From the IMG/VR virus record IMGVR_UViG_3300046167_000825, positions 186,001 through 250,000 of that record: DNA of 64,000 nucleotides, one strand, 5' to 3'. How positions within the stretch are numbered: the first letter of the stretch is position 1; each line of letters starts with the position of its first letter. Below the pieces are notes generated by a model. That model worked only from the letters and a program-made list of their open reading frames with translations. It had not been told where the DNA came from and did no database searches. Below, one piece after another: positions 2,653 through 62,955 of this stretch. A program made the translations under genes and the position numbers.

Positions 2653-2669
2653 GAATAACATGAGTGAAT

Positions 2670-2828
2670 ATGAAGATCGATGATGTGATGAACTGGGCGA
2701 GAGGAGAGGAACACGGTCTTATGGGTTTCTTACAGCAGTTCACTGAGGCTGACCTTGAACTGTTTGTCGATGAAGACCCTAGTTGCGTTCGATGGGATAT
2801 GTGCAATATAGAAGCCCCGTTGAAATAG
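2670..2828 (+). CDS. 52-aa hypothetical protein (not in ORF track)
   Basis: MKIDDVMNWARGEEHGLMGFLQQFTEADLELFVDEDPSCVRWDMCNIEAPLK fills the gap after the sigma gene. Confidence 0.55.
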   Translation: MKIDDVMNWARGEEHGLMGFLQQFTEADLELFVDEDPSCVRWDMCNIEAPLK

Positions 2829-2838
2829 TTTATTTATA
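2826..2838 (+). promoter_or_regulatory. class B (putative late) promoter TAGTTTATTTATA
   Basis: TA[AG]T-N5-TATA motif 30 bp before the Cys-rich peptide. Confidence 0.6.
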
Positions 2839-2867
2839 TCAGACCCCTTATAGATAGGAGGTGCTGT

Positions 2868-2948
2868 ATGTGTGAAAAATGTGAGTGTAAAGACAAATCT
2901 TGTTGTGATAGTTGTGATTGTTGTTCCAAACATTGTTGTTGTGAATAG
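2868..2948 (+). CDS. 26-aa metallothionein-like Cys-rich peptide (not in ORF track)
   Basis: MCEKCECKDKSCCDSCDCCSKHCCCE*, 11 Cys; AGGAGG RBS; own promoter motif. Confidence 0.8.
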   Translation: MCEKCECKDKSCCDSCDCCSKHCCCE

Positions 2949-2958
2949 TCTTTCTATA
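2946..2958 (+). promoter_or_regulatory. class B promoter TAGTCTTTCTATA
   Basis: motif overlaps the upstream stop codon, just before thioredoxin. Confidence 0.6.
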
Positions 2959-2974
2959 TAGAGCAGAGATAAGT

Positions 2975-3289
2975 ATGGAACGAATAACCGATGCAATATT
3001 TGACGAGAAAGTCCTTGATGTGGCACACACTGTGGTCGTGAAGTTCACAGCCTCTTGGTGTGCTCCTTGTAGGGCTTTCAACCCCATTTTACTTGAAGCC
3101 GAGAAAGACCATCCCCACATCTCTTTTTACGAGGTAGATGTAGAGGAGAACGAGGGGCTTACAGAGGATTTTGAGATCCGTAGTTTACCTACCACGCTCA
3201 TTTTCCATGAGGGTCAACAAGTGGGTGAGGCGAAGGGTCTCGTCAGTAAAAATGTTCTGTATGCAGTACTCTCAAAGTTTGGAGAATGA
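2975..3289 (+). CDS. trxA: thioredoxin
   Basis: FTASWCAPC active site; IRSLPT cis-Pro loop. Confidence 0.93.
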   Translation: MERITDAIFDEKVLDVAHTVVVKFTASWCAPCRAFNPILLEAEKDHPHISFYEVDVEENEGLTEDFEIRSLPTTLIFHEGQQVGEAKGLVSKNVLYAVLSKFGE

Positions 3290-3290
3290 C

Positions 3291-3464
3291 ATGGCTTTTA
3301 TGAAAACATCTGTCGGCTTAACCCAAGCCAAAGAAATCAATGAAGAAACCTTATTGTCTGGGATGACAAACGATCAGATCAAGAATCTTCTGAAACGATA
3401 TCTCGATGGTAAGAACATCGGATTCAAACCCTCAGCAGACCTCTTGAAGAAGTATGGTTTTTAA
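3291..3464 (+). CDS. hypothetical protein
   Basis: GGAG RBS, ATG 3291 (MAFMKTSVG...). Confidence 0.6.
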   Translation: MAFMKTSVGLTQAKEINEETLLSGMTNDQIKNLLKRYLDGKNIGFKPSADLLKKYGF

Positions 3465-3692
3465 TTGCAGATGTTATCTGTGACATTGTCGTCTGACAAT
3501 GTGAAATCAACTTCCTCACAACCCCTTTGTTCGGTAGTATCCTTTTTATTGGGTTCTTGTTTTGGGTACTCTAAGGCATCCAGATATAAATGCAGTTCTT
3601 CCATAATCACCTCCACAAAAAATTGTGTGGTCTTATTTGAGAACTATTGAGTAATCCATAAATAAGTTAGTCTAAATAGTGGGGGTGTAAAT

Positions 3693-4987: not shown

Positions 4988-5240
4988 ACTACAACATTTT
5001 GAGTGGATACCTTATCTCTATGGAGATGAGTTCGATATTAAAAGTGTGGAAGAGATACTACACCAGCAAATCACAGACAGAGGCTTGAACAAAACACAGT
5101 TTGTGGGTTTCCTTTTTCAGTTCTGTCTAACGATAGCCACGAAGTTCAACAAGAAACTCGGTTATGAAGAAGACACACTCCAAATAGGGGCTGTTGTTAT
5201 TCATGAAGCATTGCTATACAGAGCATTGGATAAGATGTGA
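4959..5240 (+). CDS. hypothetical protein
   Basis: ends in GTGA overlap with the sigma gene. Confidence 0.6.
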   Translation: MRLTLIPPNKLQHFEWIPYLYGDEFDIKSVEEILHQQITDRGLNKTQFVGFLFQFCLTIATKFNKKLGYEEDTLQIGAVVIHEALLYRALDKM

Positions 5241-5989
5241 TTTACAAACGAATAACCCCCGAAGAAGAAATCGAACTATCCCGAATAATTCAAGAAGGTG
5301 GTGAGGATGCACCTCTCGCAATTGAAAGATTCTTGCACGCCAATCTGAGATTAGTTCATTACCAAGTTTCGAAGATGCCTTCGGTAGACCCAGAACAGCA
5401 ACAAGATTTAATTCAAGAGGGGAACATCGGTTTAATCACTGCCATCAAAAAGTTCGACCCAAAATATGGCTGTCGGTTCTCGACTTACGCCATTTGGTGG
5501 GTTCGACAAAGTATCCAACGGTCACTAGAGAAAGATCGTACCATCAAAGTACCCTCTTACCGTCAGAGTATGAATCGAAAGATAGTCATTCTTTACGAGG
5601 AAATGGGTGAGAACCCTCAGAGTATCTCACACCTATGTGATTACTTCGGTTTAAGCAGAGAAGATATCATGTTGGCTCTTCAACCTTGCAGTTGCACCTC
5701 ATTAGAAGCCGAGATCGCTGAGGGCTTATCTATCCTAGAAACCATTGGTGTTGATGACAATCCCGAAGAACATTTTTTTGAGAAGGAGAGGGAACAAGTA
5801 TTGATGGATCTTCTAGCGAAACTCAATGAACCCGAAAAAATATTGCTTGAAATGCGATTCGGTTTGAAAGGTCAGAATCCGACATCTTATCGGGAGATTG
5901 CTGAAGTGCTCGGATTGAGCCGTCCTCAAGTATATCAGACTCTAACTAGACTTCTAGGTGAACTCCGAAAAAGTGTGTCAAAGCCCTAA
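5237..5989 (+). CDS. compact RpoD/RpoS-like sigma-70 factor
   Basis: ANLRLV, DLIQEGNIGLITAIKKFDPKYGCRFSTYAIWWVRQSI, RTIKVP, region 4 SYREIAEVLGLSRPQV. Confidence 0.92.
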   Translation: MIYKRITPEEEIELSRIIQEGGEDAPLAIERFLHANLRLVHYQVSKMPSVDPEQQQDLIQEGNIGLITAIKKFDPKYGCRFSTYAIWWVRQSIQRSLEKDRTIKVPSYRQSMNRKIVILYEEMGENPQSISHLCDYFGLSREDIMLALQPCSCTSLEAEIAEGLSILETIGVDDNPEEHFFEKEREQVLMDLLAKLNEPEKILLEMRFGLKGQNPTSYREIAEVLGLSRPQVYQTLTRLLGELRKSVSKP

Positions 5990-7743: not shown

Positions 7744-9252
7744 ATGCAATTCATCGACATCTGGCAAAAACTAACAGAAGTACAAAAAGATCGAACATTG
7801 ATACGAGCGAAATATCGTGAGTGGAAACGATTAAACAAGACGATAACAAAGGCTTTCGGTTTGGATTACGCCCAAACGAAAGCCTTTGGTTTATGGGCTA
7901 TGTCTCGTGAGTGGGATGCGACTGAGGACATCTCTGAAGAAATCTCTGAAGGTTTTTCAGAAGAAGACACACTTGATATTCCAGATGAGCCGTTGCTCGT
8001 AGATTCTTGGGCACACAACCAGACTTATTGGTACGACAAAGACCGAAAGTTGTATGTCGTGCATCTGCCTTCCCAAAAGAAACCTCTTGCCATTCCAGAA
8101 AGTAAATGGAAATCCATTCGAGAAGCCTATTCCAATTGGGATGGGACACCATCAAGTGTCAATGAGATTTGTCGGAAGCAAGGTTTATCTCGTAGAACAG
8201 TTGTAGAACTATTGCGAGTGATGGGTGTGACTCATGATAGTTCACCTTACACAGACGAGGAGTTCTCAGAAAGGGGGGAAGGGGAACTTATAGAAGACCT
8301 TCTCCGTAAGAAGGAAGAAAAAGTCTTGATGAAAGCCCAACAGAAAGAGTGGAGTCGAGTCAAAAAAGATGCTGACAAATATCGTTCGGCTTCAATGATT
8401 GCCAATGATACCTTCAATCGTTTGCTTGACAGCACGAAAAAATACAATGTCCCCAAAGCCAAATGGAAGAAACCCACAAAAGAATCCTATTCGATTGTCA
8501 TATCTCCCACTGATTTCCACTGGGGTAAATATGCACCCGTTTATGGTGGTGACCCCTACAATCGAGATATCGCCAAAGAGAGATTGTGGGAAGCAACTCT
8601 AGGTATCCTTTCTCAAGTCAAAGAAAGAGGAGCACCCGATTATATTTATCTCGCTCTCGGGGGCGATGGCTTACACATTGATAACCAAAACAAAACTACA
8701 ACTCGTGGAACACTCCAAGATTGTGATGGGACACCAGAAGAACTGGCTTGGACTTGGGTTGAGATGTGTCGTGAATATGTTGATTTAGTTCGACAGTTCG
8801 CACCCGTAAAACTCTTTGTGGTTGCTGGTAATCATGATTATTATACTGCAACACTTCTCCGTGCAGCGATGAAAGGTTGGTTTCATCGAACAGAGGAAGT
8901 TGAGATTTGTGAGAGCATGTTGAATCGTCAATACGATGTTTACGGAACGAACTTGATTGCTTTCCTACACGGTGATATTGGTTCAGTGAAAGATTGGCCC
9001 GCTATCATTGCTGGGGAAGAGCGAGAGAAATGGGGTATCACCAAGAACAAGTTCATATTCACGGGACACTTCCACACAGAAAGAGAACTGCCGACCTTCG
9101 GTAATGTGACTGTGTATCGTATGCCATCCCTCGCTGGAACTGATGCTTGGCACGCAAGTAAAGGATACAAATCCCGTAAAGCATTGGTTGGGTATGTTGT
9201 ATCAAAGACACGAGGCGTTGTCGGTCAGATAATAGAACCCGTTGAGGAGTAA
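7744..9252 (+). CDS. calcineurin-like metallophosphoesterase with N-terminal HTH region
   Basis: DFHWG, GGDGLH, GNHD, HGD, GHFH; HTH-like SVNEICRKQGLSRRTV; AGGAG RBS before ATG 7744. Confidence 0.85.
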   Translation: MQFIDIWQKLTEVQKDRTLIRAKYREWKRLNKTITKAFGLDYAQTKAFGLWAMSREWDATEDISEEISEGFSEEDTLDIPDEPLLVDSWAHNQTYWYDKDRKLYVVHLPSQKKPLAIPESKWKSIREAYSNWDGTPSSVNEICRKQGLSRRTVVELLRVMGVTHDSSPYTDEEFSERGEGELIEDLLRKKEEKVLMKAQQKEWSRVKKDADKYRSASMIANDTFNRLLDSTKKYNVPKAKWKKPTKESYSIVISPTDFHWGKYAPVYGGDPYNRDIAKERLWEATLGILSQVKERGAPDYIYLALGGDGLHIDNQNKTTTRGTLQDCDGTPEELAWTWVEMCREYVDLVRQFAPVKLFVVAGNHDYYTATLLRAAMKGWFHRTEEVEICESMLNRQYDVYGTNLIAFLHGDIGSVKDWPAIIAGEEREKWGITKNKFIFTGHFHTERELPTFGNVTVYRMPSLAGTDAWHASKGYKSRKALVGYVVSKTRGVVGQIIEPVEE

Positions 9253-14160: not shown

Positions 14161-14171
14161 TATTAAAAATA

Positions 14172-14184
14172 TATAGGAAGATTA
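14172..14184 (-). promoter_or_regulatory. class B promoter TAATCTTCCTATA
   Basis: exact motif 11 bp before the ATG, which has no obvious RBS. Confidence 0.6.
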
Positions 14185-14228
14185 TTCTGCTGGTGTGACT
14201 CTAACCGTAGTTCAAGAATCTTTGAGGG

Positions 14229-15579: not shown

Positions 15580-15756
15580 TCAGTTCATCTCACGAACTAT
15601 GAGATAAGAGAGAGGTAGGTAGAACCCAAAGAAAATTGCAAAGACAACCCATGCACTTTCAAAGAGGTACAAAAACAAGCCCACTGCTAGTGCCAACAAG
15701 AAAGAAAGCACCGTGAGAAAGAAAGAAACTAGGAATGTTTTCAATAGACGGTTCAT
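15580..15756 (-). CDS. 58-aa two-TM membrane protein (not in ORF track)
   Basis: MNRLLKTFLVSFFLTVLSFLLALAVGLFLYLFESAWVVFAIFFGFYLPLSYLIVREMN. Confidence 0.65.
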   Translation of the reverse strand: MNRLLKTFLVSFFLTVLSFLLALAVGLFLYLFESAWVVFAIFFGFYLPLSYLIVREMN

Positions 15757-15769
15757 ACCGAACTAGAAA

Positions 15770-15782
15770 TATAAAAGGGCTA
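15770..15782 (-). promoter_or_regulatory. class B promoter variant TAGCCCTTTTATA
   Basis: 13 bp upstream of the 58-aa ORF. Confidence 0.45.
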
Positions 15783-15829
15783 TTGCAATAATGCTCTGAT
15801 AAATAATGGTAAGAAAATACGAGGCGACT

Positions 15830-19276: not shown

Positions 19277-19756
19277 TCAAAGTTGATAGTTTGTGGGTTC
19301 GGTTTGGTCAATGAAGAAAGCAATTGCAAGTTTACGGATGAGTTCCTCGTTCGGGAAAACTTTCGCATAAGTGTCGGGTAAGACATGTGGTAGCCATTCG
19401 TAGGCAGCATCGCATATCTCTGGGGTGTTATAGTCCTCGTCAATATTGAACTCGTCAATGAGAGTGGTTTCCCAAAGAGCATCCATTTCGTCTAGCACCC
19501 AATCGACCCAATCTTCACGATGTATATATGCCACCATTTCAAGGAAAATCGGTGAGGTGATATCGTGATAGATAGGGAGTCCTTTTGCACCGATTTCAAA
19601 CAGACCTTGCCCATCTGAAAATAGAAGCCAATCCTCCCTCCCATCTATTTCCCAACAGAAAATCCCTTCGACTGTATAAGCATTCTGAAAGCGATTTGAA
19701 AAGGTTTTGACACCACCAAATTGCCACCAAGCACATTGCATTAAATCCATTTTCAT
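19277..19756 (-). CDS. hypothetical acidic protein
   Basis: AAGGAG RBS, first gene after the class A promoter. Confidence 0.75.
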   Translation of the reverse strand: MKMDLMQCAWWQFGGVKTFSNRFQNAYTVEGIFCWEIDGREDWLLFSDGQGLFEIGAKGLPIYHDITSPIFLEMVAYIHREDWVDWVLDEMDALWETTLIDEFNIDEDYNTPEICDAAYEWLPHVLPDTYAKVFPNEELIRKLAIAFFIDQTEPTNYQL

Positions 19757-25352: not shown

Positions 25353-25365
25353 TATAGAGAGATTA
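25353..25365 (-). promoter_or_regulatory. class B promoter TAATCTCTCTATA
   Basis: exact motif overlapping the upstream stop codon. Confidence 0.6.
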
Positions 25366-25686
25366 TTTCTTCATGATATCTTTGGTGTCTGAACCCTCTG
25401 GGAGTTTTTCAACAGCCAAATCAATCAGAGAGGTATTAGCGAGAACAGACTTCAGTTCGTGGAAAGACCTTTTCCAATCTTGTTCGAGGAGTACCTCTGT
25501 TTTCCCTTCGTGACCATGAATGGTACGAACATCCCCAATGCTATCATAAACACCCGTAGAAGGAGTGTCACTCAACCAAGTGAGGGCTACCTTCCCGTTA
25601 TCGAATATGACTCCTTGTGCTATTCTCCCAGTGCCACTGACCCCACTGTCATCTTCGACACGGTGTAAATAAAATAACTTTGCCAT
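25363..25686 (-). CDS. conserved phage hypothetical protein
   Basis: LHRVEDDSGVSGTGRIAQG...HGHEGKT; GGAG RBS before ATG 25686. Confidence 0.8.
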   Translation of the reverse strand: MAKLFYLHRVEDDSGVSGTGRIAQGVIFDNGKVALTWLSDTPSTGVYDSIGDVRTIHGHEGKTEVLLEQDWKRSFHELKSVLANTSLIDLAVEKLPEGSDTKDIMKK

Positions 25687-61184: not shown

Positions 61185-62863
61185 CAAAAAAATCTGGTGT
61201 GGCAGTCGGTAAAGTTCCTTCTCGTGCGAAAGTACACACGGGAAAACCTCGTAAAGTTGTGGCTAGTTCAATGAAAGTTGGTGGGTTACAGACCTATTCT
61301 GGTGGCGAAGGGTCTGGTGGGAACTTCTATTCTCCCGAACTGAGTACCGATTTCCTTGAACTCCCACAGAGTATGCACGAGAGATGGAATTACTTCCGTT
61401 TCTTCTATCGTTCAGAACCTTTCGTGGGTCAAGCGATTGATCTTCACACCGAACTTCCCCTTTCAAAAATCCGTCTGGGTTTCCCGAACTACATCAAAGA
61501 CAGAGAGATGGCGAAGGAGGCATTGGACTTCTGTCAGAAGTGGTCTAGGAAAATCGGATTACTTCACCGTTTGATTGAGATCGTCCATGAATACAATCTC
61601 ATTGGTGAAGTGTTTATCTTCATGGAAGATGTGACTTCAGACCCACCCGATGATCTTAAATATGAAGTCAGACGAGAACTGCTTGATGATGGGACAGTCC
61701 AAGAGGAACTTGTAGAACGAGAGGATGCCAAAGAACTGCAAGTGAAATGGTTGAAAAAGAACTACAAGGGTTGGACAGCCCTCCGAGTTCTCCCCCCAGA
61801 GCAAACCCATGTTCAATCGTTTCCATTCACGGATGAGAAGATTATTGAACTTATCCCCGATTCTAAAACAAAGGACATTATCTCACAAGCAGATAGTGGT
61901 GACCCAACAGCAAAGCGTATTGTGGACTCCATGCCTAGAGGTGTGGTGGAAGCCGTCCTTGAAGGGAAGAATATCCCCTTGAACACCGATCCAGATGCGG
62001 GTTCTTTCGTCTGCTATCTCGCTCGTAAGAAATCACAGTATGAGGACAGAGGGCATTCCATCCTTGAGAGATGTATCCGAACTCTCGTGTTCCGAGATAA
62101 ACTTCGTCAAGCCAACACTTCTATCGCTTCAAGGCACATGACCCCCATCCGTTTGGTCTATGGTGAAGATATGGATCAAGCCGATGTGGAAGCATTGAGA
62201 GAGCAAGTGGATTTGGCTCTTGCTGATCCCGACTTCTCTATCATAGCGAACTTTGAAATCCGATGGGAGGAAATGGGTTCTGACCAACGCCTCCTTGATC
62301 TTGGTTCTGAATATGACCTCACTGATCGTCAGTTGTATGCTGGTCTTGGTGTGACAGAAGGCTTACTCTCTGGTGAGAGTTCTTATAGTGGTGACCGTAT
62401 CAACTTGGAAGTCATCAACACGAGGTACATGCTTCTCCGAGAAATCCTACAAGACTTGGTTGAGGAGAAAATGCTCAAACCAATGTGTGCTAGGATGGGT
62501 TTCATTGAGGAAGATGAATACGGAAATGAACATGTGGTTTATCCCACACTTTCTTTCACAAGACTTGCACTCAGAGATAACAATGACACTTTCGATGCCT
62601 TGTTCAATCTCTATCAGAAGGGTTCATTGGATGTGGATATCATCTTGGAACTCTTGAACATTGACCCAGTAGCAACCAAAGAGAAACTAGAACGAGATAT
62701 GTTCACACTCAACGATAGTCAGTTCAATGAGGTTCTACGAGGTATCTATGGTGAGGCTGGTCGTGCATTAGCCGAGAACTCAGATGCCCTTGAAAAGATA
62801 GCCGAGAATCTAGGTCTGACCTACGAGAAGCCCGAAGAAGAAGGTGGCGGTGGTAGATTCTGA
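61181..62863 (+). CDS. portal protein
   Basis: 560 aa after terL; RFFYRSEPFVGQAIDLH, EYNLIGEVF, RGHSILERC. Confidence 0.75.
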   Translation: MTKKSGVAVGKVPSRAKVHTGKPRKVVASSMKVGGLQTYSGGEGSGGNFYSPELSTDFLELPQSMHERWNYFRFFYRSEPFVGQAIDLHTELPLSKIRLGFPNYIKDREMAKEALDFCQKWSRKIGLLHRLIEIVHEYNLIGEVFIFMEDVTSDPPDDLKYEVRRELLDDGTVQEELVEREDAKELQVKWLKKNYKGWTALRVLPPEQTHVQSFPFTDEKIIELIPDSKTKDIISQADSGDPTAKRIVDSMPRGVVEAVLEGKNIPLNTDPDAGSFVCYLARKKSQYEDRGHSILERCIRTLVFRDKLRQANTSIASRHMTPIRLVYGEDMDQADVEALREQVDLALADPDFSIIANFEIRWEEMGSDQRLLDLGSEYDLTDRQLYAGLGVTEGLLSGESSYSGDRINLEVINTRYMLLREILQDLVEEKMLKPMCARMGFIEEDEYGNEHVVYPTLSFTRLALRDNNDTFDALFNLYQKGSLDVDIILELLNIDPVATKEKLERDMFTLNDSQFNEVLRGIYGEAGRALAENSDALEKIAENLGLTYEKPEEEGGGGRF

Positions 62864-62876
62864 TAATCTATCTATA
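62864..62876 (+). promoter_or_regulatory. class B motif TAATCTATCTATA with no downstream sense gene
   Basis: exact motif right after the portal stop. Confidence 0.45.
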
Positions 62877-62921
62877 TCGTCTTATAGATGAATAAGAGAG
62901 AAGTCGTCAAAAACTTCAACT

Positions 62922-62955
62922 AAAAAAGAAAGGGGAGTCCCTCAACTCCCCTTTC
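62922..62955 (-). terminator. rho-independent terminator for the minus-strand genes
   Basis: GAAAGGGGAGT-CCCTCA-ACTCCCCTTTC with an A run on the left. Confidence 0.75.

Follow-up and report, generated by a model that had tools for sequence, protein, structure and literature searches.

Metallothioneins are small cysteine-rich proteins, and several described systems resemble the locus examined here in part. In cyanobacteria, the SmtA/BmtA metallothioneins (family 14) are cytosolic metal buffers that are genetically linked to the ArsR/SmtB-family zinc sensor SmtB and to zinc homeostasis genes (PMC3323870). SmtA is about 56 aa long, with 9 Cys plus 2 His in a zinc-finger-like fold. The alpha-domain of vertebrate metallothionein, part of a 61-aa animal protein, has eleven cysteines in about 30 residues, with CC, CxC and CxxC spacing and no aromatic residues, and holds four divalent ions in an M4Cys11 cluster. 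Among the fungal copper metallothioneins, the 26-aa Cu-MT of Neurospora crassa has 7 Cys and shows that a free-standing peptide of about this size can be a complete metallothionein. In the Yarrowia lipolytica protein, all Cys of a CCC motif take part in a Cu4Cys8-9 cluster (PMC13107397). Viral metallothionein genes have been listed as auxiliary metabolic genes in surveys of fumarole and metal-polluted soil viromes (PMC13317609, PMC12917443), where they were found by annotation and are therefore members of catalogued families. Here, we analyzed a 26-codon gene that is 42% cysteine, located in front of the thioredoxin gene of a huge marine phage, and compare it with these systems.

A cysteine-rich micro-ORF in front of a phage thioredoxin gene

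The window analyzed is a 64,000-nt stretch (64 kb) of IMGVR_UViG_3300046167_000825, a 289-kb contig. It carries replication and nucleotide-metabolism genes, including ThyX, PIN-PhoH, a class II ribonucleotide reductase, a RecD2-like helicase, RecA and a clamp loader. Searches for a likely host pointed to none: the only nucleotide match to a GenBank phage is 61 nt within thyX, the nearest protein matches are to an uncultured 485-kb phage (LR745208.1), and the sigma-factor look-alikes are viral. The locus is organized as follows.

2664-2828, + strand: 54-aa ORF, the 3' remnant of a deleted PAPS-reductase-like (PP-loop) gene; context for the micro-gene, not part of it
2824-2839, + strand: promoter-like motif AATAGTTTATTTATAT (copy 1), 29 nt upstream of the micro-gene ATG
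2856-2863, + strand: Shine-Dalgarno sequence AGGAGGTG, with a 6-nt spacer to the ATG
2868-2948, + strand: micro-gene of 26 codons plus TAG, encoding a proposed metallothionein-like peptide
2944-2959, + strand: promoter-like motif AATAGTCTTTCTATAT (copy 2), overlapping the micro-gene stop codon and 16 nt upstream of the thioredoxin ATG
2975-3289, + strand: thioredoxin (WCAPC), a neighbor with no demonstrated partnership

The ORF runs from the ATG at 2868 to the TAG at 2946-2948 and encodes MCEKCECKDKSCCDSCDCCSKHCCCE, which contains 11 Cys (all TGT), one His, and no aromatic or large hydrophobic residue. AGGAGG lies at 2856-2861, 6 nt before the ATG, and the same strong Shine-Dalgarno motif precedes several other genes of the window. 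A 16-nt motif, AATAGT-N5-TATAT, lies at 2824-2839 (the initial annotation gave 2826) and recurs at 2944-2959, where it contains the TAG stop. Allowing up to two mismatches, this motif occurs five times in the window against 0.25 expected, with 0 of 100 shuffles reaching five. Each of these copies, plus a sixth at 25353-25366, lies 10-30 nt upstream of a start codon on its own strand, mostly before genes with no Shine-Dalgarno site. It thus behaves like a phage promoter, whilst a simple sigma-70 promoter scan found nothing relevant at the locus. The downstream gene is a thioredoxin by Pfam search (PF00085, E 9.4e-23). The micro-ORF is the only stretch in any of the six frames of the window with 9 Cys in 20 residues, the next best having 6. 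All that the initial annotation had described in the sequence was therefore confirmed.

Conservation of the micro-gene in related phages

To establish whether the ORF is a gene, we retrieved syntenic contigs from marine and other metagenomes via thioredoxin homologs of 66-93% identity. The shared gene order is ThyX, a small gene, a 112-aa gene, a 263-aa sigma-like gene, the PAPS-reductase-like gene (in some relatives), the micro-ORF (in some relatives), thioredoxin, a 57-aa gene, a 101-aa gene and on to a sigma-70-family gene. The gap in front of the thioredoxin holds a Cys-rich micro-ORF in seven distinct versions of 23-26 aa with 10-11 Cys, for example MCDDCNCGKDCSCKSCECCSEKCCCK and MCDCNCKDKSCCDSCECCSESCCCK. 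In all relatives that carry the ORF, a Shine-Dalgarno sequence of the form (A/G/C)GGAGGTG or GGGGGTG precedes the ATG, and the promoter-like motif is conserved at the same position. Conservation of the reading frame and of the Cys positions in relatives had been set beforehand as a test of the gene, and both were found. The Cys columns are invariant across 14 aligned sequences, while TGT and TGC interchange. All length differences are multiples of three, including a 6-nt indel between two contigs whose thioredoxins encode identical proteins. The summed Nei-Gojobori pN/pS is 0.35 in this frame, against 1.20 and 0.94 in the other two. Across six lineages, the Cys columns have pS 0.64 and pN 0, the non-Cys columns give a ratio of 0.62, and thioredoxin gives 0.23. 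This indicates coding constraint focused on the cysteines, and illustrates that synonymous changes at conserved Cys codons can validate a gene of 26 codons.

These data also bear on the readings in which this ORF is not the product, which we consider very unlikely and reject. TGTGA occurs five times in 81 nt, as might be seen in a non-coding repeat or protein-binding site, and the overlapping +1 frame (2872-2961, a Val-rich hydrophobic 29-mer) is open and was called by a gene caller in one related contig (L013, 2904-3032). However, the +1 and +2 frames evolve neutrally, TGT to TGC changes would be Val to Ala in the +1 frame, and the strong ribosome-binding site is spaced for the ATG at 2868. 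A RiPP precursor (SCIFF/ranthipeptide or sactipeptide type) is likewise not supported, since no radical SAM enzyme, lanthipeptide synthetase or other maturase lies next to any member in the phage or cyanobacterial loci, and there is no NCBIfam hit to SCIFF-type precursors. A cysteine-codon leader peptide, in which stalling at 11 Cys codons would control the flanking sulfur and redox genes by attenuation, might be suggested by such a short ORF rich in one codon next to a sulfate-assimilation-type gene and thioredoxin. This reading is also very unlikely and largely refuted. The RNA from 2845 to 2990 folds no better than shuffles (z -0.54) and has no terminator or antiterminator, only 26 nt separate the stop from the thioredoxin ATG and they hold a separate promoter-like motif, and the ORF lies downstream, not upstream, of the PAPS-reductase-like gene. 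Moreover, the exact Cys spacing and C-terminal motif are conserved, and the cyanobacterial and T4-like members described below are the last gene of their unit and are followed by hairpins.

Three related lineages (contigs L007, L011/L012 and L015/L016) have the 263-aa gene followed by a single promoter motif and then the thioredoxin, without the peptide. The difference is exactly one unit of promoter, ribosome-binding site and ORF, bounded by two copies of the motif. On a thioredoxin tree, the two most divergent peptide-less lineages are the outgroup, and the three peptide-bearing clades sit with L007 in an unresolved node. One gain, with perhaps one loss, is enough to explain this, and the gene has then been kept across saturating synonymous divergence. 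By analogy, this unit resembles the mobile promoter-flanked small-gene cassettes of T4-type phages, which reportedly undergo PeSL-mediated modular shuffling, although the motif sequence and the phage lineage are different and no stem-loop is evident here. Some relatives also carry a PAPS-reductase-like PP-loop gene of 308-320 aa directly upstream, with conserved C-terminal Cys pairs. The 54-aa ORF of the window is 87% identical to residues 257-308, the last 52 residues, of the 308-aa PF01507 protein of a related contig (L020), and the closest relative (L150) has the full 320-aa gene at this position. This phage has therefore deleted about 270 codons of the gene and kept the micro-gene.

The initial annotation proposed that the peptide is kept reduced by the adjacent thioredoxin. 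In this clade the peptide gene always lies directly upstream of the thioredoxin, and in contigs L020-L022 the second promoter motif is missing, so the two genes would be co-transcribed there. However, thioredoxin occurs without the peptide in the three lineages above, and the peptide occurs without thioredoxin in every other context found: T4-like phages, one other phage contig (L159) and cyanobacteria. The thioredoxin already has likely clients in the class II ribonucleotide reductase of the window and in the PAPS-reductase-like gene of relatives, and adjacency can be explained by a single insertion between two copies of the promoter repeat. The functional pairing is thus not supported, and a thiol redox buffer, oxidant scavenger or thioredoxin substrate is possible but unlikely. 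A published thioredoxin-metallothionein ‘chimera’ (PMC13578184) joins a thioredoxin 96% identical to Citrobacter/Klebsiella TrxA to a metallothionein domain 98% identical to that of S. elongatus through a 56-residue linker. To us this resembles an expression-tag construct, and we do not use it as a precedent.

Similar peptides in T4-like phages and cyanobacteria

We next searched for the C-terminal motif elsewhere. The exact DNA pattern for CECCxExCCCK-stop has about 0.001 chance matches expected in 596 Gb, by our arithmetic assuming uniform base composition. It gave five hits in metagenomes, of which two are further phage relatives and three are longer peptides in bacterial contexts, and three hits in reference genomes, all cyanobacterial MAGs. 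All hits are short ORFs with a ribosome-binding site. The cyanobacterial peptides are 31-38 aa, for example MENTTCNCDCGNAECCKEKTCECCKETCCCK, again with 11 Cys, and their Cys pattern differs from that of the phage version in L020 only by a two-residue indel. Bacterial relatives of this size run counter to the statement in the initial annotation that bacterial metallothioneins are about 50-60 aa. In every case where the upstream region is available, the peptide gene starts about 10 nt after a 101-123-aa regulator, which passes the NCBIfam cut-off for ArsR/SmtB metalloregulators (NF033788, 60.8 bits against 55). The closest solved relatives of this regulator are the CadC proteins of Listeria and S. 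aureus, followed by CzrA, NmtR and SmtB, and its CLCE aligns with the CadC CVCD metal site. Beside the operon lie a ZnuA with a long His/Asp-rich loop, an ABC ATPase and a permease-sized gene (ZnuB/C). A perfect 16-bp palindrome, ATATTTGCGCAAATAT, sits 15 nt upstream of the regulator ATG. This is independent contextual support for a metal role, which applies to the cyanobacterial members only, since in the phages the gene follows a phage promoter-like motif.

A slightly looser pattern found 30-31-aa members in other viral contigs, and the C-terminal motif CECCxExCCC[KE]-stop marks these and the cyanobacterial peptides alike. Five are T4-like marine myovirus contigs, in which the peptide gene carries one Tyr codon, lies just downstream of an IscU/NifU_N scaffold gene in all four informative contigs (E 2.6e-52) and is followed by a hairpin. 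The other is a 59-kb contig, where the gene lies beside a tail-fiber-like gene. A still looser pattern (C[DE]CC-x3-CCC in any context) on viral contigs returned out-of-frame, low-complexity sequences. The IscU neighbor, together with the PAPS-reductase-like gene and thioredoxin of the window's clade, fits an Fe-S, sulfur or thiol role as well as it fits a Zn/Cu role. An Fe-S or sulfur-relay peptide, carrying an iron-sulfur cluster or persulfide (sulfane) sulfur, is therefore the strongest rival, although we regard it as unlikely. In cyanobacteria the partner is a CadC/ArsR-type thiolate sensor beside a Zn-type ZnuABC, not suf or isc genes. The PAPS-reductase-like gene is absent in some relatives and reduced to a stub in this window, yet the peptide is kept. 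Very dense CC and CCC runs are typical of metallothioneins rather than of Fe-S ligand spacing.

To assess how firm the homology is, we compared alignment scores with composition-matched shuffles. Whole-peptide similarity between phage and cyanobacterial members exceeds the shuffles (for example 103 against 60 +/- 7.7), but the C-terminal 11 residues were the search pattern. For the N-terminal halves alone, the T4-like and L159 peptides resemble the cyanobacterial ones (p about 0.001), whereas the window's clade does so only marginally (best p 0.02, most comparisons not significant). We therefore treat common descent as probable but not proven, since the shared total of 11 Cys and the shared C-terminal motif could in principle be convergent.

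The peptides are absent from annotated collections. No gene is called at the micro-ORF in any related contig, and exact look-up of ten family peptides in 15 billion proteins found none. A profile HMM of the 14 peptides gave no hits among 1.84 billion representative proteins, although the profile is too short and such ORFs are rarely called. No Pfam model, metallothionein families included, nor NCBIfam model matched at E up to 10, and a PDB profile search gave no hits. A tblastn search of two peptides against GenBank phages gave no match, but the low-complexity filter may hide such sequences, so this is not evidence of absence. In the ESM Atlas, the only named families among the protein language model look-alikes are metallothioneins, with weak scores, which we take as a lead only. 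AlphaFold2 run on the alignment without metals gave no confident fold (pLDDT 59, pTM 0.24), as expected for an apo-metallothionein, but this proves nothing. We found no description of this family in the literature, although the collection searched is incomplete.

A proposed micro-metallothionein family

Taken together, the ORF is a genuine protein-coding micro-gene, with high confidence, and belongs to a previously unannotated family of 23-38-residue peptides with 10-11 Cys. The consensus is C-x(1,2)-C-x-C-x(3,4)-C/CC-x(2-4)-C-x-CC-x3-CCC-[KE]-stop, and the family occurs in several unrelated marine phage lineages and in cyanobacteria. The most likely function is metallothionein-like, a reading that we hold with moderate confidence. 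In this view, the thiolates would wrap a small metal-thiolate cluster and so buffer or sequester a soft metal in the infected cell, with Zn(II)/Cd(II) or Cu(I) as candidates. The peptide has the small size, high Cys content, lack of aromatic residues and CxC, CC and CxxC arrangement expected of metallothioneins, with invariant Cys and loosely constrained spacers, and its Cys count equals the ligand set of an M4Cys11 cluster. In cyanobacteria the gene occupies the position of effector gene in a thiolate-type metal-sensor operon inside a zinc-uptake locus. Phages appear to have captured it and placed it behind their own promoter-like motif and a strong ribosome-binding site, so that it would be made regardless of host metal status. 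Our analysis demonstrates that the gene is real, conserved and under purifying selection, and establishes the distribution of the family and its gene neighborhoods, whilst metal binding, expression as a peptide, the identity of the metal and the benefit to the phage are inferred from sequence and context. The interpretation in the initial annotation is thus partly supported: a hidden micro-gene with the conservation pattern of a metallothionein holds, the thioredoxin partnership does not gain support, and the ideas of countering host Cu/Zn toxicity or supplying zinc for zinc-finger proteins remain conjecture.

The peptides differ from SmtA/BmtA in length and ligand set, being 23-38 aa with 10-11 Cys and usually no His, and they do not belong to that family by profile match. 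The linked cyanobacterial regulator is of the CadC-like alpha3 Cys type and is co-operonic rather than divergent. There is no detectable sequence relationship to the vertebrate alpha-domain, in which a CCC run is not a feature. The fungal copper metallothioneins are eukaryotic and unrelated in sequence, and a Cu(I) role here would rest on analogy alone. Unlike the viral metallothionein genes reported from surveys, this family is invisible to annotation pipelines.

A broader reading, for which we consider the odds about even, is that this is an unrecognized, ribosomally made micro-metallothionein family of 23-38 aa with 11 Cys, the smallest and most Cys-dense known in prokaryotes. In marine cyanobacteria it would be the effector of a CadC/ArsR-type metal-sensor operon beside znuABC. 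At least three unrelated marine phage lineages (a huge-phage clade, T4-like myoviruses and one other) would have captured it independently, as an auxiliary gene to take over the zinc, copper or thiol economy of the host during infection. If the peptide binds metal, it would add a new family to the short list of prokaryotic metallothioneins, unseen in genomes and viromes because its size (26 aa) falls below gene-caller limits, and would provide a minimal, chemically synthesizable model of an 11-thiolate metal cluster. It would show that marine phages carry metal-handling genes that annotation cannot see. It would also give marine cyanobacteria a second zinc- or soft-metal-buffering system alongside BmtA, in organisms where trace-metal handling matters for carbon fixation and phosphorus acquisition.

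Promoter-like motifs and the sigma-70-family genes around the locus

Inspection of the remainder of the window revealed further copies of the promoter-like motif AATAGT-N5-TATAT at four positions:
14171-14186, minus strand
15769-15784, minus strand
25353-25366, minus strand
62862-62877, plus strand

Each copy lies 10-13 nt upstream of a start codon that lacks a Shine-Dalgarno site, which suggests very short-leader mRNAs. One of these copies precedes a 58-aa membrane ORF (15580-15756, minus strand), which is too short for the ORF call used here. A motif copy is also followed by an 11-codon ORF (62888-62923, plus strand; MNKREVVKNFN) and then by a strong GC-rich hairpin (about 62929-62955) between convergent genes. 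This arrangement may represent a tiny gene or a small RNA.

A second recurring upstream motif, (T)TCCGTATAA / TCGGTATAAT, appears 15-25 nt before many starts that do have a Shine-Dalgarno site, and was seen upstream of the genes at 19756 (minus strand), 34017, 37899, 42170, 44178 and 48899. It may mark a second promoter class. Two sigma-70-family genes (1786-2652 and 5237-5989, both plus strand) flank the locus. One is a divergent ECF-like gene (34 bits, below the cut-off), and the other is a 250-aa gene whose best NCBIfam match is the cyanobacterial RpoD-type model (137 bits, also below the cut-off).

Short ORFs adjoining the micro-ORF and the thioredoxin

The 54-aa ORF at 2664-2828 (plus strand) is the 3' stub of a PAPS-reductase-like PP-loop gene, which is intact (308-320 aa) in close relatives. 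This phage has deleted about 270 codons of the gene. In the gap after the thioredoxin operon lies a 51-aa ORF on the minus strand (3461-3616), which corresponds to a 47-54-aa gene called at the same place in relatives. In the related contig L013, a gene caller called the Val-rich +1 frame (2904-3032, plus strand; 42 aa), which overlaps the micro-ORF and the thioredoxin start. That frame evolves neutrally, and so this is a mis-call.

Gene context of the Cys-rich peptides in other contigs

In the cyanobacterial contig L149, a perfect 16-bp palindrome, ATATTTGCGCAAATAT, is found at 8697-8712, 15 nt upstream of the ArsR-like gene. It is a candidate operator for autoregulation of the regulator-peptide operon. 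T4-like marine phage contigs (L158 at 5344-5715, minus strand, and also L155, L140 and L065) carry an IscU/NifU_N Fe-S scaffold gene, which is directly followed by a 30-aa member of the Cys-rich peptide family and then by gp4. Finally, in the L020-L022 lineage of related contigs, the second promoter motif is missing between the micro-ORF and the thioredoxin (TAAATAGGCGACTAGTATCT-ATG). The micro-ORF and the thioredoxin would therefore be co-transcribed in this lineage.
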